The translations under genes were made by a program, and so were the position numbers. The notes beneath the pieces are model-generated. The model saw nothing but the letters and a program-made list of their open reading frames with translations, was not told the DNA's origin and searched no databases. A stretch of DNA of 64,000 nt from Isurus oxyrinchus (Eukaryota), in assembly GCA_026770705.1 (NCBI GenBank), contig JANJGN010000052.1, positions 3,100,001 through 3,164,000 on the forward strand, in the 5' to 3' direction. Shown here piece by piece: positions 22,282-37,749 of this stretch (its first letter is position 1; the number at the start of each line of letters is the position of its first letter).

Positions 22282-23009
22282 GTAAGTGCTGTGTTATAAT
22301 TACTCAACAATTCACATTCAACACTCAATGGGAAACAACACAAACTGTGACGTTTACATATTAACACAAAACACAGCTTATTATAACACACTGTCTGATT
22401 CTCAATAATCCGGTGATAGCTTCCAGTTCACTCCTAAAGCAACCTCTAATACTCACTTTAATATCAATGATTAAATGTATTGACTGTGTCCATCAATGTT
22501 ATCAGGTTATCCACTCCCATCGATCTCTCTAATCCTGTCTCGAAGTCTGACTTAGCGACAGAAGAAAGATTCACAATTCTGTAGCACTTTTCACCACCTC
22601 AGCACGGACCAAATCACTTCACAGCCAAAGAGCTGATTCCTGAATTTTAGTTACTATTGTAATGTGGGAAACACAGCAACCAATTTGCGCACAGCAAGCT
22701 CCCACAAATTGCAAAGTAAAAAATGGCCTAGATCGCTGAGGGACTGATGGGTTAGTGCACTCCAAACTCTGGTCTGCTCCACCACCCTCACCCACTATTA
22801 TCAGTTCAAGTGTCTCGGAGTGAACGTGTATTAAGCTGAGAGACAGAAACACCAAAGTCTCAAAGCAGGAAATTCTCTCCTAATCATTGTAACCTCTCAG
22901 ATCTGATATCATCCTTGTAAAAGTGCTTTTTCTTGTGGGACTGTGATTTCTATTTGAACTGATGCTTCACGTTATATTTCTCTAAAAGGATCCATTCTCT
23001 GTGTGTTAG

Positions 23010-23306
23010 ATTTCACAGATAAACCCACGATATTCCCTGCTGAAATTATTGCAGGAAAGCGTGTGGATGTAAGCTGCACCTTCAACACAACGTGCAATGG
23101 AACAGCAGCACCTGTCTTAACCTGGGACACTCCCACTGACGTACCTGTATCAGTCTCAAACACTGTAACTCAGCATGGTGTCACTCTGACCTATACTTCT
23201 GTTCTGACCCTGATCCCATCACTCAAACACCACAGACACAATCTCAGCTGCAGAGTGAGATATCCATCTGTTTCATCGGAGCGGACCCTCGTACTAACTA
23301 TGCAAG
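23010..23306 (+). CDS. Gene A C2-set exon (Siglec domain-2 type)
   Basis: TTAG acceptor (alternative in-frame CAG 9 nt later), CAAG|GTAAGT donor, 297 nt; KPTIFP...SCTFNTTC...LTW...LSCRV with the extra BC-loop Cys. Confidence 0.92.
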
Positions 23307-23630
23307 GTAAGTACGGACACCCTTCATTCTACATCAGCACTCCCTCAGCGCTGACCCTCTGACAGTGCAGCCCGTTCTCAGTGTCCACATTCTCATGCCT
23401 CTCAAAGTGCTTCACAGTCGATAGAAGTTAACTGATCTTTATTTGATTGTTGCTGAATGAAGAGACAAGCTGTCTAAACTTTGCATCTCACACACATTAT
23501 TTTCCATGGCAACACCTCCTCCAATCAGAGACCACTTGCTGATTAACCAGCACTCTCTTCCCTTTAAATATAAATTGTTGTTCACTTTCTGTTGGTAAAC
23601 CTGCAATCTGTCTTGTTGAGTCCAGTCCTG

Positions 23631-26286: not shown

Positions 26287-27784
26287 TTCTCCGCCGATGC
26301 TGCCAGACCTGCTGAGTTTTTCCATGTATTTCTGTTTCTGTTTCTGTTTTGAATTTCCAGCATCTGCAGTTTTTTTGCTTTTAGTGCTGGGCAGTTCCTC
26401 AGCAAGGATTCGGGCCACAAAACATTGCGAGTGCTGTGGGTCTGCGCCACGATTTAGAGAGCTGTGCTTGGCACGCCTATTCTAGTCCCAGTCCAGTGTG
26501 GTGGGGAGAGTCTGGCAGTCCTGGGTTGGTCGTGCCCAGCATGGTGTGCAGGACGTGGTCAGTCCCTCACACACGTCCATCCTGGGGGTGGGTGTCTTGA
26601 TACTAGGCCGCAGGTGGCACAATCCCAGTCAGGGGAGGCATCTGCAGCCTGTCAGTGGGGAGCAGGTAATATAGAGAGTAGGGGTGGGGGTGGGAATCGA
26701 GGGGGGCCGGTGGTCTCTGTAAGTCACAGTACAATGGGCCTCTAGTTGGAGAGAGGTCAGGTCTACATGGGGCATTGGGATGTCAACATCAGACAGTCTA
26801 GGGAGGAGGACTGGGATGTCAACCCCGAACACAATAAGATCAAGGATTAAAGAGGAAGGGAGGAGACTGATTGGAAGGAGGGGAATGTGCACATTATGCT
26901 CCTCCAGCACGATGGGAGGGACTGTGATGGTTACGGGGGTGGGGGGGGGGGGTGACGTGTGAGGGGATAGACGCTTACCTGGTGGTATTGCCTCAGCCTC
27001 ACCCTTTTTCAAGCTGATCCAATGTCGCAGTTGAAGAATAAGCTACAAAACAAATTGGCAGGGGAGGTCTCCCAGGGCCTGTGGGAGACATCACCCACTG
27101 CATCTTCGGCCTGTTTGAAGGGGCACCCGAACAATTCCGGCTTTTCCAAATGATGAGGAAGACACAGCTGCACCCCGAGTCCCCTACTGGGGATCCAGAA
27201 GGTTGCAATAGCGCTGCGAGGGACTCATGGGCTCCACAGTGACTCCCTAATTAGCAACTGGAAGGTTTATGTTCATTTATCTTTATTATCCGTTCATATT
27301 GAGCTCCTGATTTGTCACCTTACTGTACCTCGTCCAATGCTTCTGTTATCAGGACTTCCACATCGATGTGAAAGAGCCATGATGATAGCAGACAGTCGCA
27401 CAATGGGAATGGCACTAGGCCAGTGATCCAGAGGCCCAGGTGAATGCTTTGAAGGCACGGGTTCAAATCCCACCACGGCAGCTGGAGGAATTTCAGTTCG
27501 ATTAATCAATAAATTTAATTGATTGATACATTTTTTTCTTATTCATTTCAGGGATGTTGGTGTCGCTGGCTAGGCCAGTATTTGTTGCCCATCCCCAATT
27601 GCCTTTGAGAACATCTGGATATCTGAGTTAGGATCAGGAGTAGGTCACTCAGTCCCTCGAACCTGCTCTGCCATTCAGTAAGATCATGGCTGATCTGATT
27701 GTCACCTCAACCTCAGATTCCTGCCTACCCCCAATGACCTTTCACCCCCTTGTTAATCAAGAATCTATCTAGCTCTGTGGAAGG

Positions 27785-28095
27785 GGAGCCAATCAATCGG
27801 GCTGCTTTGTCCTGGATGGTGTCGAGCTTCTTGAGTGTTGTTGGAGCTGCACTCATCCAGGCATGTGGAGAGTATTCCATCACACTCCTGACTTGTGCGT
27901 TGTAGATGGTGGACAGGATTTGGGGAGTCAGGAGGTGAGTTACTGTCTGCAGGGTTCCCAGCCTCTGACCTGCTCTTGCAGCCACAGTGTTTATATGGCT
28001 GGTCCAGTTCAGTTTCTGCTCAATGGTAACTCCCAGGATGTTGATATTGGGGGATTCATTGATGGTAATGCCATTGAATGCCAAGGGGCGATGGT
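27785..28095 (-). mobile_element. CR1-group LINE RT C-terminal fragment
   Basis: ILGVTI...LNWTSHI...QVRSVMEYS..W motifs. Confidence 0.85.
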
Positions 28096-28669
28096 TATGA
28101 ATGGTCTGTGGGATATTCTGGTACAAAATTTCAACACTCAGACTCCAGATGCAATATTCAAGTGGTTCCTTTATTAGGCATGTGGGGAGCAAACGCTGGG
28201 CAGTCCAGGCGCTTCTCCACCGAGGTTCAAATGAGCACAGTTTATATATTTTTTACTCTCAGTTACAAGGTAATGGTATTAGTTAGACAAAGGCCACAGC
28301 ACAATGACCCTCCGGTGGGCTGATAATTGTGTTCTTGTTCAGTAATTACAGGGCAGAGACTGGCTATTGTCCTTTTGAGACAGCAAAGAATCTATGTTTG
28401 TTCGCTACAAAAGGTTACCGGAGGCTGACTGGATGTGGTTCAAGGCCATCGGACGGTGTGAAATAACCTTCCCCATTTCTTGATTGAGTCACCCTGTGTC
28501 CTTGTGTGTGTGTCTCCCATTTCCTCATTGCAAATTTACAGCTGAGCCCTTAGTACAGGTTTTTAAGTTTTCACGTAAGGATGTGTACGCTTTGGTGCCC
28601 TAGCTGCTGGTCCTGGCTGGCTCTTGAACATAAATCCAAATTTTCTGCACCTTCAATTAGATTCTCTCT

Positions 28670-29730
28670 TGTTGGAGCTGGTCATTGCCTGGTACTTGTG
28701 TGGCATGAATGTTACTTGTCACCTGTCAGCCCAAGCCTGGATGTTGTCCAGGTCTTGCTGCATTTGGACATAACTTGCTTCAGTATCTGAGGAGCCGTGA
28801 ATGATGCTGAACATTGTGCAAACATCAGCAAACATCCCCACTTCTGACCTTATGATGGAAGGAAGGACATTGATGAAGCAGCTGAAGATGGTTGAGCCTA
28901 GGACACTACCCTGAGCAACTCCTGCACTGATGTCCTGGAACTGAGATGATTGACCCCCAATAATCACAACCATCGTCCTTTCTGCTGGGTATGACTCCAA
29001 GCAGCAGAGAGTTTTCCCCCGATTCCCATTGACTCCAGTTTTGCTCGGGCTCCTTGATTTGCCACACTCAGTCAAATGCTGCCTTGATGTCAAGGACAGT
29101 CCCTCTCACCTCTGGAGTTCAGCTCATTTGTGCATGTTTGAACCAAGGCTGTAATGAGGCCAGGAGCTGAATGATCCTGGTGGAACATAAACTGAGCGTC
29201 AGTGAGCAGGTTCTTGCTAAGCAGGTGCTGCTTGCAAGCGCTGTTGATGACCCCTTCCATCACTTTAGTAATGATCAAGAATAGACTGCTGGGGAATTGG
29301 CTGGGTTGGATTTGTCCTGCTTTTTGTGTACAGGACGTACCCCATAGCCGGGTAGTTGCCAGTGTTGCAGCTGTACTAGAAAATTCCAGAAAAGCTTGGC
29401 TAGGGGCGCAGCAAGTTCTGGAGCACAAGTCTTCAGTACTATTGCCAGAATATTGTCAGGGCCTGGAGCCTTTGCAATATCCAGTGCCTTCAGCCCTTTC
29501 TTGATGTCACGTGGAATTAATCGAATTGGCTAAAGATTGGCATCTGTGATGCTGGGGACCTCAGGAGGAGGCCGAGATGGATCAGCCACTCAGCACTTCT
29601 GGCTGAAGATTGTTGCGCATGCTTCAGTCTTGTCTTTTGCACCGATGTGCTGGGCTCCTCCATCATTGAGGATGGGGATATTTGTGGAGCCTCCTCCTCC
29701 AGTGAGTTGTTTAATTGTCCACGACTGGAT
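28670..29730 (-). mobile_element. CR1-group LINE RT fragment
   Basis: GVAQGSVLG, MFADVCT, MQQDLDNIQAWAD motifs; frameshifted. Confidence 0.85.
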
Positions 29731-31574
29731 GTGACATCTGGAATGCGAAGCTAGTCTCAGTAATGTTGACCATGAAACTAAGGCCAATTGTTGCAAAAAC
29801 CCATCTGGGTCACTAATGCCCTTTGGGGAAGGAAACCTGCCGTCCTTACCCATTCTGGCCTACGTGTGACTCCTGACCCACAGCAATGTGGTTGACTCTT
29901 AACTGGCCCCTGAAATGGCCGAGCAAGCCACTGAGTTATATCAAAACCCGCCACAGACCAGTCAAACCAGGCGAACTGCAGCACTTCGAAAAGGCAGCTC
30001 AGCACCCCCTTCTCAAGGGGTCCGTCTGGAACAGGTAACAAACGCTGTCCACATCCCATGAAAGAATTTTGGTAAAAAGGTAGCCGTGTATCACCACCCA
30101 CGGCCAGCGCCAACCCCCCCACCCCTACCTGATTGCACCAGTTTCAGATTACACCAGGTCAATGAACGGATAGAAACCCAAACCAATGAGATGAGCACAG
30201 AGAAGGATCAAGCCAGAGAGAGTTGGTGGGAAGAATTGGGAAAGCAACAAAAAAGGCAGAGCGGACACTAACGCTATAACAAAGTAAAGACCAGAGGAGG
30301 AAGGAAGCAAGTGTGAAGAGGAATTGAGAGTAGAGCTGGTAGGCTGCTTGTCGAAGCCAAGGAACCTCCATAGGGCACATCCACAGTGCTGTTGGGGAGG
30401 GTGATACATGATTTTGACCCAGGATCATCAAGTGTTGCACTGGCAGAACCTTTAAAGTAAAGGGACCTTTACTACCCATGCACCGCCCCGCCCTACAAAG
30501 CTGTTGACCTGCTGAGTCCACCTGTACAGGCAACCTCCAGACAGTTGGCTACAGAGGCCATTGCAGCTGCTGAATATGACTTCCCGTTTCAAACCCTTCA
30601 TGAATGCAAGGATGGAGAATTCAGCAGGAATATTCCTGCACACCCTGTGGCAGATCCTGTAAATAAAAGGGACCTTCACTCACTCCCCAAAGCTGCTGAC
30701 CTGCTGATTCACATCTACAGGCAACCTCCAAATAGTCAACTAGAGAAGACAACGCAGCTGCTGAATGTGACTCCTAGTTTTAAACCCTTCACTCTGGAAA
30801 GAAGGAATCCAGAGCAATGGCCTCAGTATGATTCTTCACAGAAACTGATTTTAAATCTCATGTCTAAGTATTATTTTTCCTTTGCTTACATTTTAATCCC
30901 TGCACCTGATGGCTTTATCGCTTCACATTTAATAACTTTCAGCAGGAGCCACGTTCAAATTGAATGGACAAGCTGGCTTGGGAGGCCAAAAGGCCTACTC
31001 CTGCTTCTGTTTATTTATGTTAGTGTTGTTATGTAGTGGAACTAGAGAGGTTATAGCAGTTATGAGAACATTAAGCAAACAGCAGCAAGAATTGAACACC
31101 TACGTTGTGGTTTATGAAAAGGTTTTCAACCTGGTCAACTGGTAAAATCTGTTGAAAGTGGGCTATCATGGCGTGTGCCCTTTGTGAGATATTTGTAACA
31201 ACGTTCTCGATGTCGGAACAGCTTGCATTGAACAAAGCTGATCTTTACCCAGAACTTCAGAGGAAGGGGGGACAATTGTTCCCTGGTGTGGGGGGCATGG
31301 TGGGGGGGGAGGGTGAGGGAGAGACAAGTAGCCTGAAGTACCAAGCCAGACACTTTGTGAAGACAAAAGTTGTTTATTCATTTTTTTTTACAAATCATAA
31401 TCTTTACAATTAAAGACCCGACAAGATAATGGTGAATCATGAACACATTGTCGGGGTGAATCTGTGCCCGGGAGCATAAAGCAGCAAAATCAGGAGCCCG
31501 CTTTACATCTCTCTGAATTTTAACTATCATTAACCCCAGTAACATCCATTCAAATGACTTAGTCATAAGATTCC

Positions 31575-32005
31575 TCACACATTCACTTGCACACTCACAC
31601 ACCCACACCCACACAGACACACTGACACACTCACTCATTCACATTGACACACACTGACACAGTCACACACACCCACACAGACACACTGACACACTCACTC
31701 ATTCACATTGACACACACTGAAACAGTCACACACACCCACACAGACACACTGACACACTCACTCATTCACATTGACACACACTGACACAGTCACACACAC
31801 ACATACACACACACACGCTGACACAATCACACACATTCACATTGACACACACATATTGACAGTCACACATACACACACACACTCACTCATAAAGACAGAC
31901 ACAAACACAGCCACGCACACACTAACACATACTCACACACACTCACTCACGCACACACACATTGATACACTCAAACACTCACAGACACACTCACATACTC
32001 ACACA
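31575..32005. repeat. CA-rich low-complexity tract
   Basis: Interrupted (CA)n. Confidence 0.9.
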
Positions 32006-32498
32006 TAAACAAAGAAGTTTACATTATAAACACTATAAACACAGGTTAGATTAAAAGTGCAGTATATTGGTACAAAGATAGGCCATAATGAAAACTTCAA
32101 TATGAGATCGTCACTAATAAATCCAATGGGGATTTCAGGAGAAATCTCTTCACCCAGACAGTGGGGAGAATGTGGAACTCGCTCCCACAGAGAGTAGTTG
32201 AGGTGAATAGTGTCGATGTATTTAAGGGGAAGCTGGATAAACACACGAGGGAGAAATGAATAGAAGGATATGGTGATGGGGTGAGATGGAGAAGGGGTGG
32301 GCGGAGTCTCGTGAGGAGCAGGAACACCAGCATGGAGCAGATGGGCCAAATGGCTTCTTTCCCTGCTGTAAAACGCAGGTAAAGTTTCAGTTGGAATTAA
32401 TGAACAGGGCCTGTGTTAAATAGATTGCTAAGCAGTAGATAAGGAGGGGAGAGGCTGTGGCATGGTGCAGGATGACCTTGCGTGAATGAGGACAGGGT

Positions 32499-32615
32499 CT
32501 AATATCTACAGCAGATACCACAAGTCTCATTTGGTTCTCTCCAATTACAGCAGTTACAGCAGAATCTGCAGTGCCGCTGTCTGCCCATTCTCTTCTGGCG
32601 CTGCAGCAAGGAGCC
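32499..32615 (-). CDS. HAMP: Hepcidin exon 3: GSLLQRQKR|MGRQRHCRFCCNCCNWREPNETCGICCRY*
   Basis: TTTTCCAG acceptor, phase 0; furin site RQKR; 8-Cys pattern C-x2-CC-x-CC-xn-C-x2-CC; TAG at 32501-32499. Confidence 0.93.
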   Translation of the reverse strand, partial: GSLLQRQKRMGRQRHCRFCCNCCNWREPNETCGICCRY

Positions 32616-33084
32616 CTGGAAAAGCAGGAGGACAATAGGTGAGAACATTCCGGAAAGAAAGAAGGCATCATTTCAATCAGGCGCGTCATTGGAAGGAGGA
32701 TGGCGCATTTCTATAGCGCCTTTCCCCTCCTCAGGATGGCCCAAAGTGTTCCACAGCTGAAGGAAGGACTTTTTCTGAAGTGAGCTCACCGCTGTAATGT
32801 AGGAAACGCAGCAGGCAATTCACGCACAGCAAGATCCCACAAACAGAAATGTGATAATGGCCCCGATTTTCAGTTTTTTACCAATGTCAGTTGAGGGATA
32901 AATGTTTGCCCCAGGAAAGCGGACATAACTCCACCCCATCCACCCCCCACCACCCCCTCCACACATACCCCCAACTCCTGACGCACTTCATCTAAATTGT
33001 GACCATGGACTCCTCTATATCCACCTGAGAGGGCAGATGTTGTCTCAGTTTAACATCTCATCTGAAAGACAGCGCCTTCAAAAG

Positions 33085-33345
33085 TGCAGCACCCCCTCAG
33101 TACTGACCGTCTGACAATGCAGCACCACTCAGTACTGACCCTCCAACAGTGCAGCACTCCCTCAGTACTGACCGTTTGACAATGCAGCACCCCCTCAGTA
33201 CTGACCCTCCGACTGTGCAGTCCCCCGCCGGTACTGACCCTCTGACAGTGCAGCACTCCAAGACTGACCGTCTGACAATGCAGCACCCCCTCAGTACTGA
33301 CCCTCCGACTGTCCTGCCCCCCCCGCCGGTACTGACCCTCCGACA
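33085..33345 (+). repeat. 33-bp minisatellite adjoining a SINE-like element (about 32700-33090)
   Basis: Same unit family as 25768-26286. Confidence 0.8.
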
Positions 33346-34882
33346 GCTCGGTAATTTCTCAATTATGCCTGGTGGTCCTTTTAACTCAGAGCTGAGAGTT
33401 GCAGAGAATCGAGCACACATCCTGAACTGACACTTGCAGTGCAAGTACTGGGAGCGCGCTGGTCATTATCATGCTGCTGTCTGTGGGATCTTACTGTGCG
33501 CCAATGGCTGATTCTTTTCCCACAGTACATCAGTGACCTCACATGAAAGAAAAAAAGCACTTGATTGTCTGCGAAACACTTTGGGACGTCCTGATGTGTT
33601 GGAAGGCGCTAGAGAAATGCAAGTCCTCTTTGTCTTTCACTCGATCCTCTAAGGTGTCTGTTGATTAACCAGCCTCTCGGTGTATGATGTAGGCCTGGTT
33701 ATAAACAGTTAGAAGGATCAAATATCAAAAATGCTTTGGCTGACAGTCAAACCGATTGTGCATTCGGAGAGATTAGATATGGTCTGCACACAATGACTCC
33801 AGTCTCTGGCACTGACTGCCGCCTGGGGTCTCCCTTCCACATAACACTCACAACTTGCATTTACACAGCGCCTCTGACATTGCAAAATGTCCCAGCCCAC
33901 GTTACCGGAGCGTAAATCAGAGAGAAGTCTAACACTGAGTCACATATGGAGATATTAGGGTTAGGTGACCAAAAGCTTGGTCAAAGATGTCAGTTTTTAA
34001 GGAGCGTCTTAAAGGAGAGAGAGAGAGAGAGGCAGAGAGGTTAAGGGAGGGTATTCCGGAGCTCAGGGCCCCAGGCAGCTGAAGGCACGGCCACCAATGG
34101 TGGAGTGATGGGAATCAGGGGGACCCGGGAGATGCAGTAATGTCAGAGATTTTGGAGGAACATCGGGACCGGAGGAGGTGTTCTCCTGCTCCATATCTCT
34201 CTCTCTCTTCCTCTCTTCCACTCCTCCTCTCCCTGTCTCTCTCTCTCCTACTCTTCCTCTCAATTGCCCTCTCTCCCAATCTTTCACTCCTCTCTCCCTT
34301 TTCCTGTCTCTCTCCCTCTCTCTCCCCTGTCTCCTTCTCCCACTCTGTATCTCTCCCTCTCTCTCACACTATTTTTGTACCTTTCGCTCACTCTGTAACT
34401 CTCCCTTTCCTGTTAATTTCTCTCTCTTGGACAATCTCTCTTCCCTTTTCACTTTCCCTCACTCCGCATCTCTTCTTTAATTTCTCCCTCTGTCACTCTC
34501 TCCCACCTATGTTCTTTCCCTTTCACCCCTCCCCGTCCCACTCTCTGTCTCTCTCTTCCAATCCCTCCCTCCCCCATTCCATCCCTCTCTCCGACTCTCG
34601 ACTCCCAGCCTCTCTTTAACCCACTCCCAGGCTGGATCAGTCTCCCTCTCACTGTTCCCGGCGTGGGTTACATTTAAAATTCCTGTGGGGATATGTTCAC
34701 TTCCTTGGAATTGTCTCTTCCCAGCTTTGCAAAAAAAGGGGGGGAGGGGGGCTCGATTTCAAACATGCCTCCTGAGTATAACCGAGACAGACTGCCACTG
34801 AAATCAGCTTGAAATCAGAAAACTTTCTGTGGAAGAAACGAGCAGGGAGAAACCTTAAAATAAGGAATGAATTTCCACCTAC

Positions 34883-34939
34883 CGTGTCCGGGGAATCCAC
34901 AGATTTCTCAATCGTCGAAGAACCTAAAGCAGTGTCAAC
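34883..34939 (-). CDS. HAMP: Hepcidin exon 2 (pro-region) VDTALGSSTIEKSVDSPDT
   Basis: TTTTTGCAG acceptor, ACG|GTAGGT donor, 57 nt, phase 0-0; size and position fit the short middle exon of hepcidin genes. Confidence 0.8.
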
Positions 34940-35659
34940 CTGCAAAAAGAAAGAATTTATCAGGGAGAAAGTGAGAGGAGGATTGAGGGAGAGGGAGAGA
35001 GAGAGAGAGAGGTACAGGAGAGAGAGAGGGAGGAGGACAGACTTGCATTTCTCTAACGCCTTTCACCACATCCCAATGCATTTCACAGCCACTGAAGGAT
35101 GTTTTTGAAGTGCACTCACACTGTAGGAAATGTGGCAGCTGATTTGTGCACAGCAAGATCCCACAAATAGCAATGTGATCATGGCCTAGATCATCTGCTT
35201 TTTAGTGATGTTGGGTGAGGGATAAATATTGGTCCCAGGACACCGGGGAGAACTCCCCCTGCTCTTCCTCCAAATAGTGGCTGTGGGATCTTTCACACCC
35301 GCCCGAGAGGGCAGACGGGGGACTCAGTTTAATGTCTCATTCAACATTGTTGCGCTCCCTCAGTACTAACCCTTTGACACTGCAGCACTCCCTTAGTATT
35401 AACCCTTCGATAGTGCTGCGCTCCCTCAGTACTGTCCCTCCGTCAGTGCAGCTCTATTTCAGTACTAACTCTTCGACACAGCAGCACTCCCTCAGTACTG
35501 ACCTCCGACAGTATAGCACTCCCTCAGTACTGTCCCTCCAATAGTGCAACACTTCCACACTACTGACCCTCTGAGAGTGCAGCACTCCCTCAGCACGGAG
35601 CGTTGATCAACATTATGGGACTGAATTCCCTGGAGTGAGACTCAGACCAGTGATTTAGG

Positions 35660-36440
35660 TAGGGTTGTGGGGGCTGGAGGAGGTTACAGAGATAGGGAGG
35701 ATTCTAGAGGCTGTAGGAGGTTACAGAGATAGGGAGGGTTGTAGGGGCTGTAGGAGGTTACAGAGATAGGGAGGTGAGTAGGGGCTGTAGGAGGTTAAAG
35801 AGATGGGGGGGTTGTGGGGGCTGGAGGAGGTTACAGAGGTAGGGAGGGTTGTAGAGGCTGGAGGAGGTTACCAAAATAGATACTGTTGTAGGGGCCACAG
35901 TAGGTTACAGAGATAGGGAGAGTTATAGTGTGGAGAGGACGTTATAGAGTTCATGAGCATTGTAGGGGCTGGAGGAGGTTACAGTGATTCTGAGGGTCGT
36001 GGGGCCTGGAGGAGTTTACAGAGATAGGGAGGGTTGTAGGGTCTGGAGGAGGTTACAGAGATAGGGAGGGTTGTAGGGTCTAGAGGAGGTTACAGTGATC
36101 ATGAGGGTTGTGGGGCCTGGGGGAGGTTACAGAGATAGGTAGGGTTGTAGGGGCTGGAGGAGGTTACAGAGATAGGGAGGTTTATAGGGGCTGGAGGAGG
36201 TTACAGAGATAGGGAGTGTTGTAGGGGCTGGAGGAGGTTACGGAGATAGGGAGTGTTGTAGGGGCTGGAGGAGGTAACAGAGATAGGGACAGTTGTAGGG
36301 GCTGGAGGAAGTTACAGAGATAGGGAGGGTTGTAGGGGCTGGAGGAGGTTACAGATATAGGGAGGGTTGTAGCGGCTGGAGAAGGTTACAGAGATAGGGA
36401 GGGTTGTAAGGCCTGGTGGAGGTTACAGAGATAGGGAGTG
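35660..36440 (+). repeat. 37-bp G-rich minisatellite (GTAGGGGCTGGAGGAGGTTACAGAGATAGGGAGGGTT) in HAMP intron 1
   Basis: About 20 tandem units. Confidence 0.95.
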
Positions 36441-36639
36441 GCTGAGGAGGGATTGAAAACAAGAATGAGAATTTCAGGGGAAATGACAGAAGGAAATGAT
36501 GTTAAATTCATAGAGGGCGACAATATTAAAGGCACGAACATAATAATATCAAACTGCGGAAGTGACCAGTCTATCTGGGTGGTAGACGTAGAGTCATGTG
36601 CAAGAAACACCTCACCCAGAGGGACATCTCTTAGCTTAC

Positions 36640-36732
36640 CCTCGACAAGGAGAAGAAGTGACTCAGCTGCAGGGAGAGCAGCAAAGTCAGAGTGAACAAG
36701 ACAAGTTGCCATTTCATCTGGGAGCTTCCCAT
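36640..36732 (-). CDS. HAMP: Hepcidin exon 1 (signal peptide) MGSSQMKWQLVLFTLTLLLSLQLSHFFSLSR
   Basis: ATG at 36732 (second ATG 36717), hydrophobic core, AGG|GTAAGC phase-0 donor; the three exons give an 88-aa prepropeptide. Confidence 0.85.
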
Positions 36733-36801
36733 CTCTGCCTGTCTCTTCTGATCATCTGGCTCTGCTTTGATGCTTTGGTTTGTAACTAGAGGAGCTTCCT
36801 G

Positions 36802-37015
36802 CTCTTATACCTGAAACACTTGAAGGGGACAGCCGCGGGTGGGTAGCTGTGTGGTATCACACCCATTTCTGGATATTGCAGTGTCGATGTTCCCTGTCCC
36901 ACTGGCCTGGGACCAGCAGTAAGGTCACTGGGACATTGACTGTCTGGCGCCGAGAACTATCAGTCCCTCCGCAACGCCCTTCACCTTGTGCAAATATGTG
37001 TTCATATTGACGCAA
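36802..37015 (-). promoter_or_regulatory. Hepcidin promoter: TATA-like TATAAGAG (36809-36802), BMP/Smad element GGCGCC-AGAC (36951-36942), C/EBP-like sites (36986-36993, 37007-37015)
   Basis: Motifs read directly; GGCGCC is the established BMP-response core of mammalian HAMP promoters. Confidence 0.6.
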
Positions 37016-37179
37016 CACAACATAGCAAAAACATAGGGGCTGGTTCTTATGTCGGCAAATCAGGTGAACCGCACGCCCCCTAACCCCTTACTCCTCTCAT
37101 TGCTACACTTACTATTTTACAAATTGTGTGCGTTGCTTTTATTTTGGACAAGGGGCCTCGAGGGGGAACTGATTTACAT

Positions 37180-37365
37180 TTTGTAACCTCCTCCAGCCCC
37201 TACAACACTCCTTATCTCTGTAACCTCCTCCAGCCCCTACAACCCTCCCTATCTCTGTAACCTCCTCCAGCCCCTACAACACTCCTTATCTCTGTAACCT
37301 CCTCCAGCCCCTGTAACCCTCCCTATCTCTGTAACCTCCTCCAGCCCCTGTAACCCTCCCCATCT
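37180..37365 (-). repeat. 37-bp minisatellite, inverted relative to 35660-36440
   Basis: About 5 units. Confidence 0.9.
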
Positions 37366-37749
37366 CTTGAAGGGTTCTCAAAATTTTCAACTGTCAAGGA
37401 ACCCTGGGTTGGTGAGCGTGAACCCTGACCTCTCCTAGTGCAATTTAGTTAGGGTTTGGGGGTGGGACAAGGGTAAGGGCATTAGTAGCGTGATTCTCCC
37501 TCGTTATGCCGTGTGTTCCCCATTCTTAACTCAGTGTACTTTGTAAGTCTGTATAATCTCAGTGTCATCCTAATGTTAGAAGTTCATTTGTGACTTCAGT
37601 AAACTCAGTTTTTGTCTTGCACCAAAACCAGTTGTCTGCTGCACTTTGTGACAAGCCCCGAATAAGTCCAAGGTCTAGAACCCAGGGAGTGGGAGTGATT
37701 CAGACGGCTCAGAAGTCGCAGGTGAAGCTGACACACACCACCACACCCT

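Follow-up and report, generated by a model that had tools for sequence, protein, structure and literature searches.

The 64,000-nucleotide (nt) stretch of Isurus oxyrinchus DNA analyzed here (assembly GCA_026770705.1, contig JANJGN010000052.1, positions 3,100,001 to 3,164,000; referred to as the window, with coordinates counted from its first letter) carries on its minus strand a gene that sequence profile, cysteine pattern and three-exon layout place in the hepcidin family. The gene encodes an 88-codon prepropeptide (31 + 19 + 38 codons, with both exon junctions in phase 0), and the comparisons below suggest that its mature peptide, rather than the remainder of the precursor, has been rewritten relative to the conserved hepcidin of sharks.

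A spliced three-exon hepcidin gene

Exon 1 (36640-36790) consists of a short 5' untranslated region (UTR) and 31 codons of coding sequence (36732-36640, with the ATG at 36732) that translate as MGSSQMKWQLVLFTLTLLLSLQLSHFFSLSR and hold the signal peptide, and it ends in the donor AGG/gtaagc in phase 0. After intron 1 (34940-36639; 1,700 nt, delimited by a spliced joint), in which a repeat scan found a minisatellite of about 24 units of 37 nt (35619-36510), exon 2 (34883-34939) contributes 19 codons of the pro-region, VDTALGSSTIEKSVDSPDT, and is flanked by tttttgcag/ and /gtaggt, with joints on both sides. Intron 2 (32616-34882; 2,267 nt, again from spliced joints) separates it from exon 3, which opens with the end of the pro-region, GSLLQRQKR (32589-32615), the acidic pro-region being encoded by exon 2 together with the beginning of exon 3; its last four residues, R-Q-K-R (32600-32589), form the predicted convertase site. 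The mature peptide and a TAG stop codon (32499-32501) follow, and then a 3'UTR (32200-32498, based on RNA depth, loose contig ends and the sequence; far end undefined) that enters a dispersed repeat from about 32380 downward and in which no AATAAA was seen in the stretch that was read. The ATG, both pairs of splice sites, the convertase site and the stop codon are all canonical, and the open reading frame (ORF) is intact.

Translation of the minus strand from 32588 to 32502 gives MGRQRHCRFCCNCCNWREPNETCGICCRY, a predicted mature peptide of 29 amino acids with eight cysteines at positions 7, 10, 11, 13, 14, 23, 26 and 27, i.e., the C-terminal arrangement C-x2-CC-x-CC-loop-C-x2-CC of a precursor of the ~85-amino-acid type. 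The peptide starts with MGRQRH and ends with RY, and between its fifth and sixth cysteines lies the eight-residue loop NWREPNET (32546-32523), which includes two Glu and the sole sequon of the peptide, N-E-T (mature residues 20-22, 32531-32523). The original prediction, made from the letters of the window alone, had quoted this 29-residue, eight-cysteine peptide and its eight-residue turn with two Glu and N-E-T, and both are confirmed by the translation, on the minus strand, behind the RQKR site and followed by the stop. A second minimal convertase motif, R-M-G-R, is found inside the peptide, and a cut there would yield a 26-mer with a QRH start.

Besides translation, the assignment of the peptide draws on Pfam, a structure match, an alignment with shark relatives and RNA contigs. 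Exon 3 alone matches the Pfam Hepcidin profile (PF06446) with 29.7 bits (E 8e-7; cut-off 27), and the best match among solved structures is bass hepcidin 1S6W (E 0.11), with every cysteine aligned and a four-residue gap opposite the loop; zinc ribbons of ribosomal protein L43 fill the other five of the six solved-structure rows, and we rejected these as matches of Cys/Arg composition. Given the Pfam match, the canonical acceptor and the contigs that splice exon 3 to two upstream exons (below), we conclude that the mature peptide is not a chance ORF. The full hepcidin cysteine motif occurs once in the six frames of the window, and blastn and tblastn searches of the window with the three exons matched only the exons themselves, that is, they revealed no second hepcidin copy. 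A CCxCC match at 56394-56408 was considered as a second hepcidin and rejected, as it shows no further hepcidin features.

To assess expression, we rely on public sequencing runs. Of the 16 runs listed by a search, eight contained part of exon 3 plus its 3'UTR, from two studies and none recorded as RNA, and four of these runs were compared with 32050-36950: X1, X2 and X3, from one sample of organism A, and X5, from organism B. Organism A is taken to be the same species as the window because some X1-X3 contigs are identical to it. The intron 1 joint (34937 to 36638 with the cut shifted by +2; plus-strand ends CT..AC, corresponding to GT..AG on the minus strand) is covered at a depth of 25,037 in X1, 66 in X2 and 10,779 in X3, and the intron 2 joint (32614 to 34882, cut shifted by +1; CT..AC) at 26,316 in five X1 contigs and 2,475 in eight X3 contigs, with a second rendering of the latter joint (32616 to 34885 with one letter between) present in X1, X2 and X3. 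Across these three runs, exon bins show depths of 84,000 to 760,000 vs. 10 to 2,500 for most intron bins, exon depth being 100 to 1000 times intron depth. It follows from the GT..AG joints and this exon/intron contrast that X1-X3 hold spliced transcripts whatever their record says. Depth also rises from between 0 and 5,921 in the bin 36806-36950 to between 84,474 and 302,364 in the bin 36642-36805, which places the transcript start just downstream of a TATA-like box read in the sequence (tataag, 36804-36809), probably near 36780-36790.

Over the mature region, no letter difference is listed in the RNA contigs, and the depth of the bin 32542-32705 is, by arithmetic on contig depth, explicable only with exon-level coverage of that region; hence, RNA with exactly this mature sequence is abundant. 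A lack of expression had been named as a result that would undermine the original prediction, and deep spliced contigs instead attest to expression of this sequence type, with contig depth being a poor measure of expression level.

The runs revealed a few additional features of the transcripts and the locus. There is low-level alternative splicing into intron 2, seen as a minor joint (33693-34882, minus strand; plus-strand ends CT..AC) that connects the exon 2 donor with another acceptor close to 33693 at a depth of 98 in X2 and 844 in X3. Many RNA contigs (six in X1 and 14 in X3) depart from the window at 32199/32200; the departing contigs resume in letters that match 31886-31915 with one mismatch, leaving out ~283 nt (31916-32199) between boundaries that are not GT..AG; the probable cause is an indel that distinguishes copies or haplotypes, in a 3'UTR running into a dispersed repeat. 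Finally, in run X5 of organism B, a related species, low-depth DNA contigs differ from the window at 14 of 225 nt over exon 3 (32435-32659) and at 43 of 1,109 nt, plus 15 gaps, over an intron stretch (34087-35208), i.e., exon 3 is not better conserved.

Divergence of the mature peptide among shark hepcidins

A search of predicted proteins with the ORF that holds exon 1 gave two matches among three candidates, both isoforms of Cetorhinus maximus LOC144671611, and a search with the 88-amino-acid Cetorhinus isoform gave five matches among 12 candidates, including two Scyliorhinus canicula proteins named 'hepcidin-2-like' and a third Cetorhinus isoform; a cluster look-up added 'hepcidin-1' of S. 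torazame and a UniProt 'Hepcidin'. Three of these proteins served as the long-loop comparison set: XP_078389754.1 of C. maximus ('uncharacterized protein LOC144671611 isoform X2'), XP_038670190.1 of S. canicula ('hepcidin-2-like') and XP_072325013.1 of S. torazame ('hepcidin-1'). All three have a 29-residue mature peptide with the cysteine positions of the window peptide, an eight-residue loop of the form N[KR]KG[TS]KKT and the start MSHLS(I/V)C, and the alignment of the window peptide with XP_078389754.1 and XP_038670190.1 is gapless. The extended loop, which had been regarded as a peculiarity of this gene, is therefore nothing of the kind; judging from these relatives, an eight-residue loop is the normal state of the conserved shark hepcidin. 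A sequence typical of chondrichthyan orthologs had also been named as a finding that would speak against the original prediction, and here the outcome is divided: the loop and the length of the mature peptide are typical, the N-terminus is not. As an aside, the Cetorhinus LOC144671611 isoforms X3 and X1 join hepcidin exons 1-2 to unrelated tails, and the tail of the former resembles an ORF of the reverse-transcriptase-fragment type at 29090-29428 (minus strand) of the window.

The divergence is concentrated in the mature peptide. Compared with XP_078389754.1, the window precursor is identical at 51 of the 59 prepro positions (exon 1, 28/31; exon 2, 16/19; start of exon 3, 7/9 against GSLLLREKR), vs. 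only 4 of the 21 non-cysteine positions of the mature peptide, in which all eight cysteines are kept (Fisher p 3.8e-8 for mature vs. prepro). The control comparison, between the canonical hepcidins of Cetorhinus (Lamniformes) and S. canicula (Carcharhiniformes), gives 38/59 for the prepro part and 18/21 for the non-cysteine mature positions, again with 8/8 cysteines, which amounts to 26 identical residues in the 29-mer between a lamniform and a carcharhiniform shark. In terms of prepro identity to the window, Cetorhinus stands at 86% vs. 58 to 64% for Scyliorhinus. The conservation pattern thus appears, from these alignments, to be reversed: the mature part is constrained in the canonical line and rewritten in the window gene. 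Because the rewriting affects the mature part while the cysteine scaffold is kept, neutral decay is disfavored and a changed function is favored.

The window gene and the long-loop hepcidins have in common the 88-residue, three-part precursor and, within the mature peptide, Met1, Asn15, Thr22 and Gly24. At the two ends of the peptide, MGRQRH has replaced MSHLS[IV] (N-terminus) and RY has replaced KL (C-terminus), the core reads CRFCCNCC vs. CVYCCGCC, and a strongly basic loop without a sequon (charge +4) gives way to the acidic or neutral NWREPNET (charge -1), with the net charge of the mature peptide being +3 vs. +5 in the canonical shark form. The Pfam score differs accordingly, with public shark hepcidins at 44.8 to 48.6 bits (45 bits for the long-loop forms), well above the 29.7 bits of exon 3. 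A further form, the short-loop hepcidin of S. canicula (XP_038669797.1, 'hepcidin-2-like', 84 amino acids), resembles the window gene in prepro type, cysteine framework and in having an altered N-terminus (MTNHSIC), and differs in its four-residue loop (NREN), 25-residue mature peptide and CVYCCGCC core. Sharks therefore have at least three types of mature hepcidin, this N-H-S sequon-bearing form being one of them.

No predicted protein with a window-type mature peptide was found in the collections searched. Specifically, a word search of predicted proteins with the exon 3 ORF gave no candidate, and HMMER with the 38 amino acids of exon 3 against 1.84 billion representatives gave no match at E <= 0.001, a weak blank given that the query is short and cysteine-biased, that true shark relatives (50% identical over the 38 amino acids) miss this E-value, and that the library holds one representative per 50% cluster, behind which (e.g., behind a canonical representative) a window-type protein could sit.

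The same animal also transcribes a hepcidin of canonical type, as indicated by a loose contig end and a flank-matching contig. The X1 and X3 contigs break at 32586-32589. In X3, the contig with a loose end at 32586 goes on with 38 different letters, 30 of which are displayed; in reverse complement, made by hand, and in the frame set by the common Met codon before them, these 30 letters encode SHLSICMYCC (MSHLSICMYCC as a whole), of which 9 of 10 residues are those of the canonical catshark form. In X1, a contig with a depth of 6,460 agrees with the window on either side, over 29 letters or more, but skips 32503-32585. The canonical-type transcript agrees with the window type in its pro-region and where its 3'UTR begins and is sharply different between them, with 13 of 30 nt differing and the three cysteine codons identical by hand count. 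A boundary this sharp points either to diversifying selection that acted strongly on the mature segment or to two old types of mature segment whose flanks have undergone concerted evolution. The view of the window gene as a functionally diverged paralog, put forward in the original prediction, gains from these results, in that divergence and the loss of the canonical N-terminus are supported and a canonical MSHLSIC transcript is present in the same RNA.

Likeness to Hamp2 and the surroundings of the gene

Iron-regulatory hepcidins (mammalian hepcidin-25, teleost Hamp1) and the window gene are alike in Pfam family, eight-cysteine framework and three-exon structure, and in both a convertase-released C-terminal peptide (a predicted one in the window gene) has six residues before the first cysteine and an aromatic residue two positions after it. 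The window peptide differs in its longer loop, its C-terminus and the absence of the N-terminal x-[ST]-H-[LF]-x-[IL] motif. In human hepcidin, the N-terminal residues H3, F4 and I6 are needed for the down-regulation of ferroportin. The window peptide holds only Met1 in common with the N-terminal motif of the canonical shark forms, and the absence of a canonical N-terminus stands as originally described, MGRQRH being found in place of shark MSHLS[IV] or sea bass QSHLSL. Equally, the earlier statement that iron-regulatory forms of fish start with QSHL agrees with sea bass Hamp1, which starts with QSHLS (PMC5665920). An N-terminal x-x-His metal site is not present in the 29-mer since the motif is absent, a QRH start existing only in the 26-mer.

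The teleost peptides whose core comes closest to that of the window peptide are of the Hamp2 ('antimicrobial') type (e.g., Hamp2 of sea bass and the bass peptide in PDB entry 1S6W). These also have no QSHLS-type N-terminus, share the core CRFCCNCC...CG[IV]CCR[YF], carry a sequon in the loop (N-M-S in sea bass) and occur beside an iron-type sister in the same animal; they differ in having a five-residue loop vs. the eight residues of the window peptide, the prepro part of which is of shark type. By hand count, with the teleost sequences as published, the window peptide matches sea bass Hamp2 at 13 of the 15 non-loop positions, Hamp1 at 11 and the canonical shark form at 9. Common descent with teleost hamp2 was considered and rejected, given that identity to a canonical-type precursor of sharks reaches 86% over exons 1-2 and the pro-region and that the loop is of shark length, the similarity to Hamp2 being limited to the 15 non-loop core positions. 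A Hamp2-like core on a shark-type precursor would most simply represent convergence. By analogy, then, the window gene may work most like teleost Hamp2 without being its ortholog.

This analogy bears on ferroportin. Sea bass Hamp2 did not lower ferroportin, and Hamp1 did (PMC5665920). In the hepcidin-ferroportin complex, as described elsewhere (PMC8235187), the loop is 'highly variable' and largely extracellular, and both conserved termini of hepcidin lie buried in the cavity. Because the loop is extracellular and the termini are buried, the long loop of the window peptide need not matter for ferroportin, and the rewritten termini should.

With respect to the fold, AlphaFold2 gave a hairpin with WREPNE at its tip (loop at residues 25-30 of the 38-residue model) with a predicted local distance difference test (pLDDT) score of 69 from the single sequence and a lower one, 53.6, with a four-row alignment; Foldseek against the PDB returned nothing significant (best E 6.2, arenicin-3 hairpins, and no hepcidin entry).

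Upstream of the gene, a candidate BMP-responsive element, GGCGCCAGAC (GGCGCC abutting a SMAD-box-like AGAC; 36942-36951, minus strand), lies ~135 nt before the TATA-like box. It occurs once in the 64 kb, against 0.03 occurrences expected, with three of 100 shuffles reaching one match and with the pattern having been chosen post hoc; elements of the GGCGCC-AGAC type presumably have a role in HAMP promoters. Further upstream of the promoter, the repeat scan found an inverted array of five units of the 37-nt minisatellite of intron 1 (37182-37367), which places the promoter and exon 1 between inverted repeats with arms of 186 nt, at most 92% complementary and 750 to 870 nt apart. A search of 31000-38000 against Rfam gave nothing at threshold.

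In the wider neighborhood, Pfam identified a C2-set immunoglobulin exon on the plus strand (23003-23359; 36.5 bits, cut-off 21) and, below the respective cut-offs, a V-set-like exon on the minus strand (39566-39898; 22.1 bits, cut-off 26) and reverse-transcriptase fragments, also on the minus strand (27725-29428; 20.3 bits). The hepcidin gene is thus flanked by exons of immunoglobulin-superfamily type (C2-set and, weakly, V-set-like). Mammalian HAMP lies beside MAG and CD22, which are Siglec genes.

Function of the diverged peptide and its implications

We favor, at a probability of roughly 60% and largely by analogy to teleosts, the hypothesis that the window gene encodes a hepcidin of defence or immune type without the canonical action on ferroportin, and that the MSHLS form is the iron hormone. 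Under this hypothesis, the signal peptide would be removed, the peptide would fold into a four-disulfide beta-hairpin, and convertase cleavage after R-Q-K-R would free the 29-mer, or the 26-mer if cleavage occurs after R-M-G-R. The gene comes from the shark long-loop lineage, of which it keeps the length, cysteine spacing, Asn15, Thr22 and Gly24, with nearly all else replaced, and its rewritten, ferroportin-buried termini would have cost it ferroportin activity, leaving a neofunctionalised paralog; this reading is preferred because mature residues, including those of the buried termini, have been replaced on a kept scaffold. The long-loop MSHLS(I/V)C form, conserved across shark orders and transcribed in this animal, would be the likely ferroportin ligand, and the window type a secreted host-defence or immune peptide, the shark counterpart of teleost Hamp2.

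Several observations do not sit easily with this hypothesis. The candidate GGCGCC-AGAC motif in the promoter would suit an iron/BMP-regulated HAMP gene, and the depth of the window type in X1, about 190,000 to 210,000 vs. 6,460 for the canonical contig, would fit the main hormone. The drop in charge from +5 to +3 does not favor a gain of antimicrobial or membrane activity, and the structure predictions are weak at the two pLDDT values given above. Further, the records of runs X1-X3 allow these only to be guessed to be RNA, and the RNA contigs are not assignable to this particular copy, the intron contigs being ~1 to 2% off the window.

The alternative that survives best, although we consider it unlikely, is that the peptide acts as a glycopeptide with a glycan on Asn20, or as the ligand of another receptor, such as a second ferroportin of cartilaginous fish, at which its rewritten loop and termini would be aimed. 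The N-E-T sequon is at the predicted tip of the hairpin and is absent from all four other shark loops compared, the window peptide being the only one of five shark mature peptides to carry it, and, according to PMC8235187, a second ferroportin whose residue at the C326 position is different occurs in some cartilaginous fish. The loop sequon may be glycosylated; however, a 29-mer containing four Asn could well carry one N-x-T by chance, which makes the site unremarkable, and other hepcidins have sequons too, sea bass Hamp2 in its homologous loop (N-M-S) and XP_038669797.1 near its N-terminus (N-H-S). Moreover, the sequon of the window peptide is nine residues from the C-terminus of the precursor and between cysteines that are predicted to be disulfide-bonded, which is a poor context for oligosaccharyltransferase, and the phrase 'glycosylated hepcidin' was found in no paper of the literature searched.

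It is quite unlikely, in our view, that the window peptide is a working iron hormone, with a ferroportin that has co-evolved with a different hepcidin N-terminus and with the MSHLS transcript being minor or specialised. Such a role would account for the very high contig depth at the three exons, above that of the single canonical-variant contig, and for the promoter motif, and it would be in keeping with immunoglobulin-superfamily surroundings like those of mammalian HAMP and with the Phe kept two residues after the first cysteine. Yet it is the MSHLS(I/V)C peptide that shows, at 26 of 29 residues identical across orders, the conservation expected of a receptor ligand, and the window peptide has only 4 of 21 non-cysteine residues in common with it. 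In addition, the changed parts are those buried in ferroportin in the complex (PMC8235187), and Hamp2, whose core is the most similar among the teleost peptides, did not regulate ferroportin (PMC5665920).

A functionless, recently degenerating duplicate, with the RNA coming from near-identical copies or from exons shared by the family, is very unlikely: the contigs that cannot be assigned to a copy, the 1 to 2% offset of the intron contigs, the departures at 32199/32200 and an exon 3 contig of organism B that is no better conserved (14/225 nt) than the intron contig (43/1,109 plus 15 gaps) would be consistent with it, but the ORF, ATG, splice sites, convertase site and stop are all intact, RNA with exactly this mature sequence is found at exon-level depth, and retaining eight of eight cysteines in register while 17 of the 21 other mature positions changed would, had the cysteines drifted as the other positions did, have a chance of ~0.19^8, roughly 2e-6. 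The most speculative combination, which we regard as a distant prospect, is that sharks might have two hepcidin systems, the MSHLS form acting on the C326-type ferroportin and the very highly expressed window type, with its rewritten termini and a loop tip that may be glycosylated, on another receptor, for which the non-C326 ferroportin would be the obvious candidate; if true, the second system would represent a second such axis of peptide and transporter, for iron or some other metal, and not an antimicrobial peptide.

Cartilaginous fish are of particular interest in this context. According to PMC8235187, hepcidin first appears in jawed vertebrates, along with the cysteine of ferroportin that it needs; since hepcidin arose in jawed vertebrates, cartilaginous fish show the earliest hepcidin systems. 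Hepcidin is also listed among the plasma proteins of the nurse shark in a plasma proteome study (PMC9207270). The literature searched, which lay outside subscription journals and was judged by titles and the opening of abstracts, showed no paper on the sequences of shark hepcidins or how they diversified. The standard shark hepcidin, as it emerges from the proteins compared here, is a 29-mer with an eight-residue basic loop that is conserved between orders, and databases file it under uninformative or inconsistent names such as 'uncharacterized', 'hepcidin-2-like' and 'hepcidin-1'.

Returning to the favored hypothesis of a defence or immune-type paralog, sharks, like teleosts, have split hepcidin into a conserved and a fast-diverged form, and have apparently done so independently. 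The teleost precedent makes such a split unsurprising in kind; what seems new here, as far as these comparisons go, is the conserved long loop typical of the lineage, the reversed conservation pattern and the Hamp2-like core. Studies of shark iron metabolism or immunity that rely on annotation would miss the diverged type, the RNA of which is very abundant and which is absent among the predicted proteins searched. If confirmed, the split would mean that a defence peptide has evolved from an iron hormone more than once.

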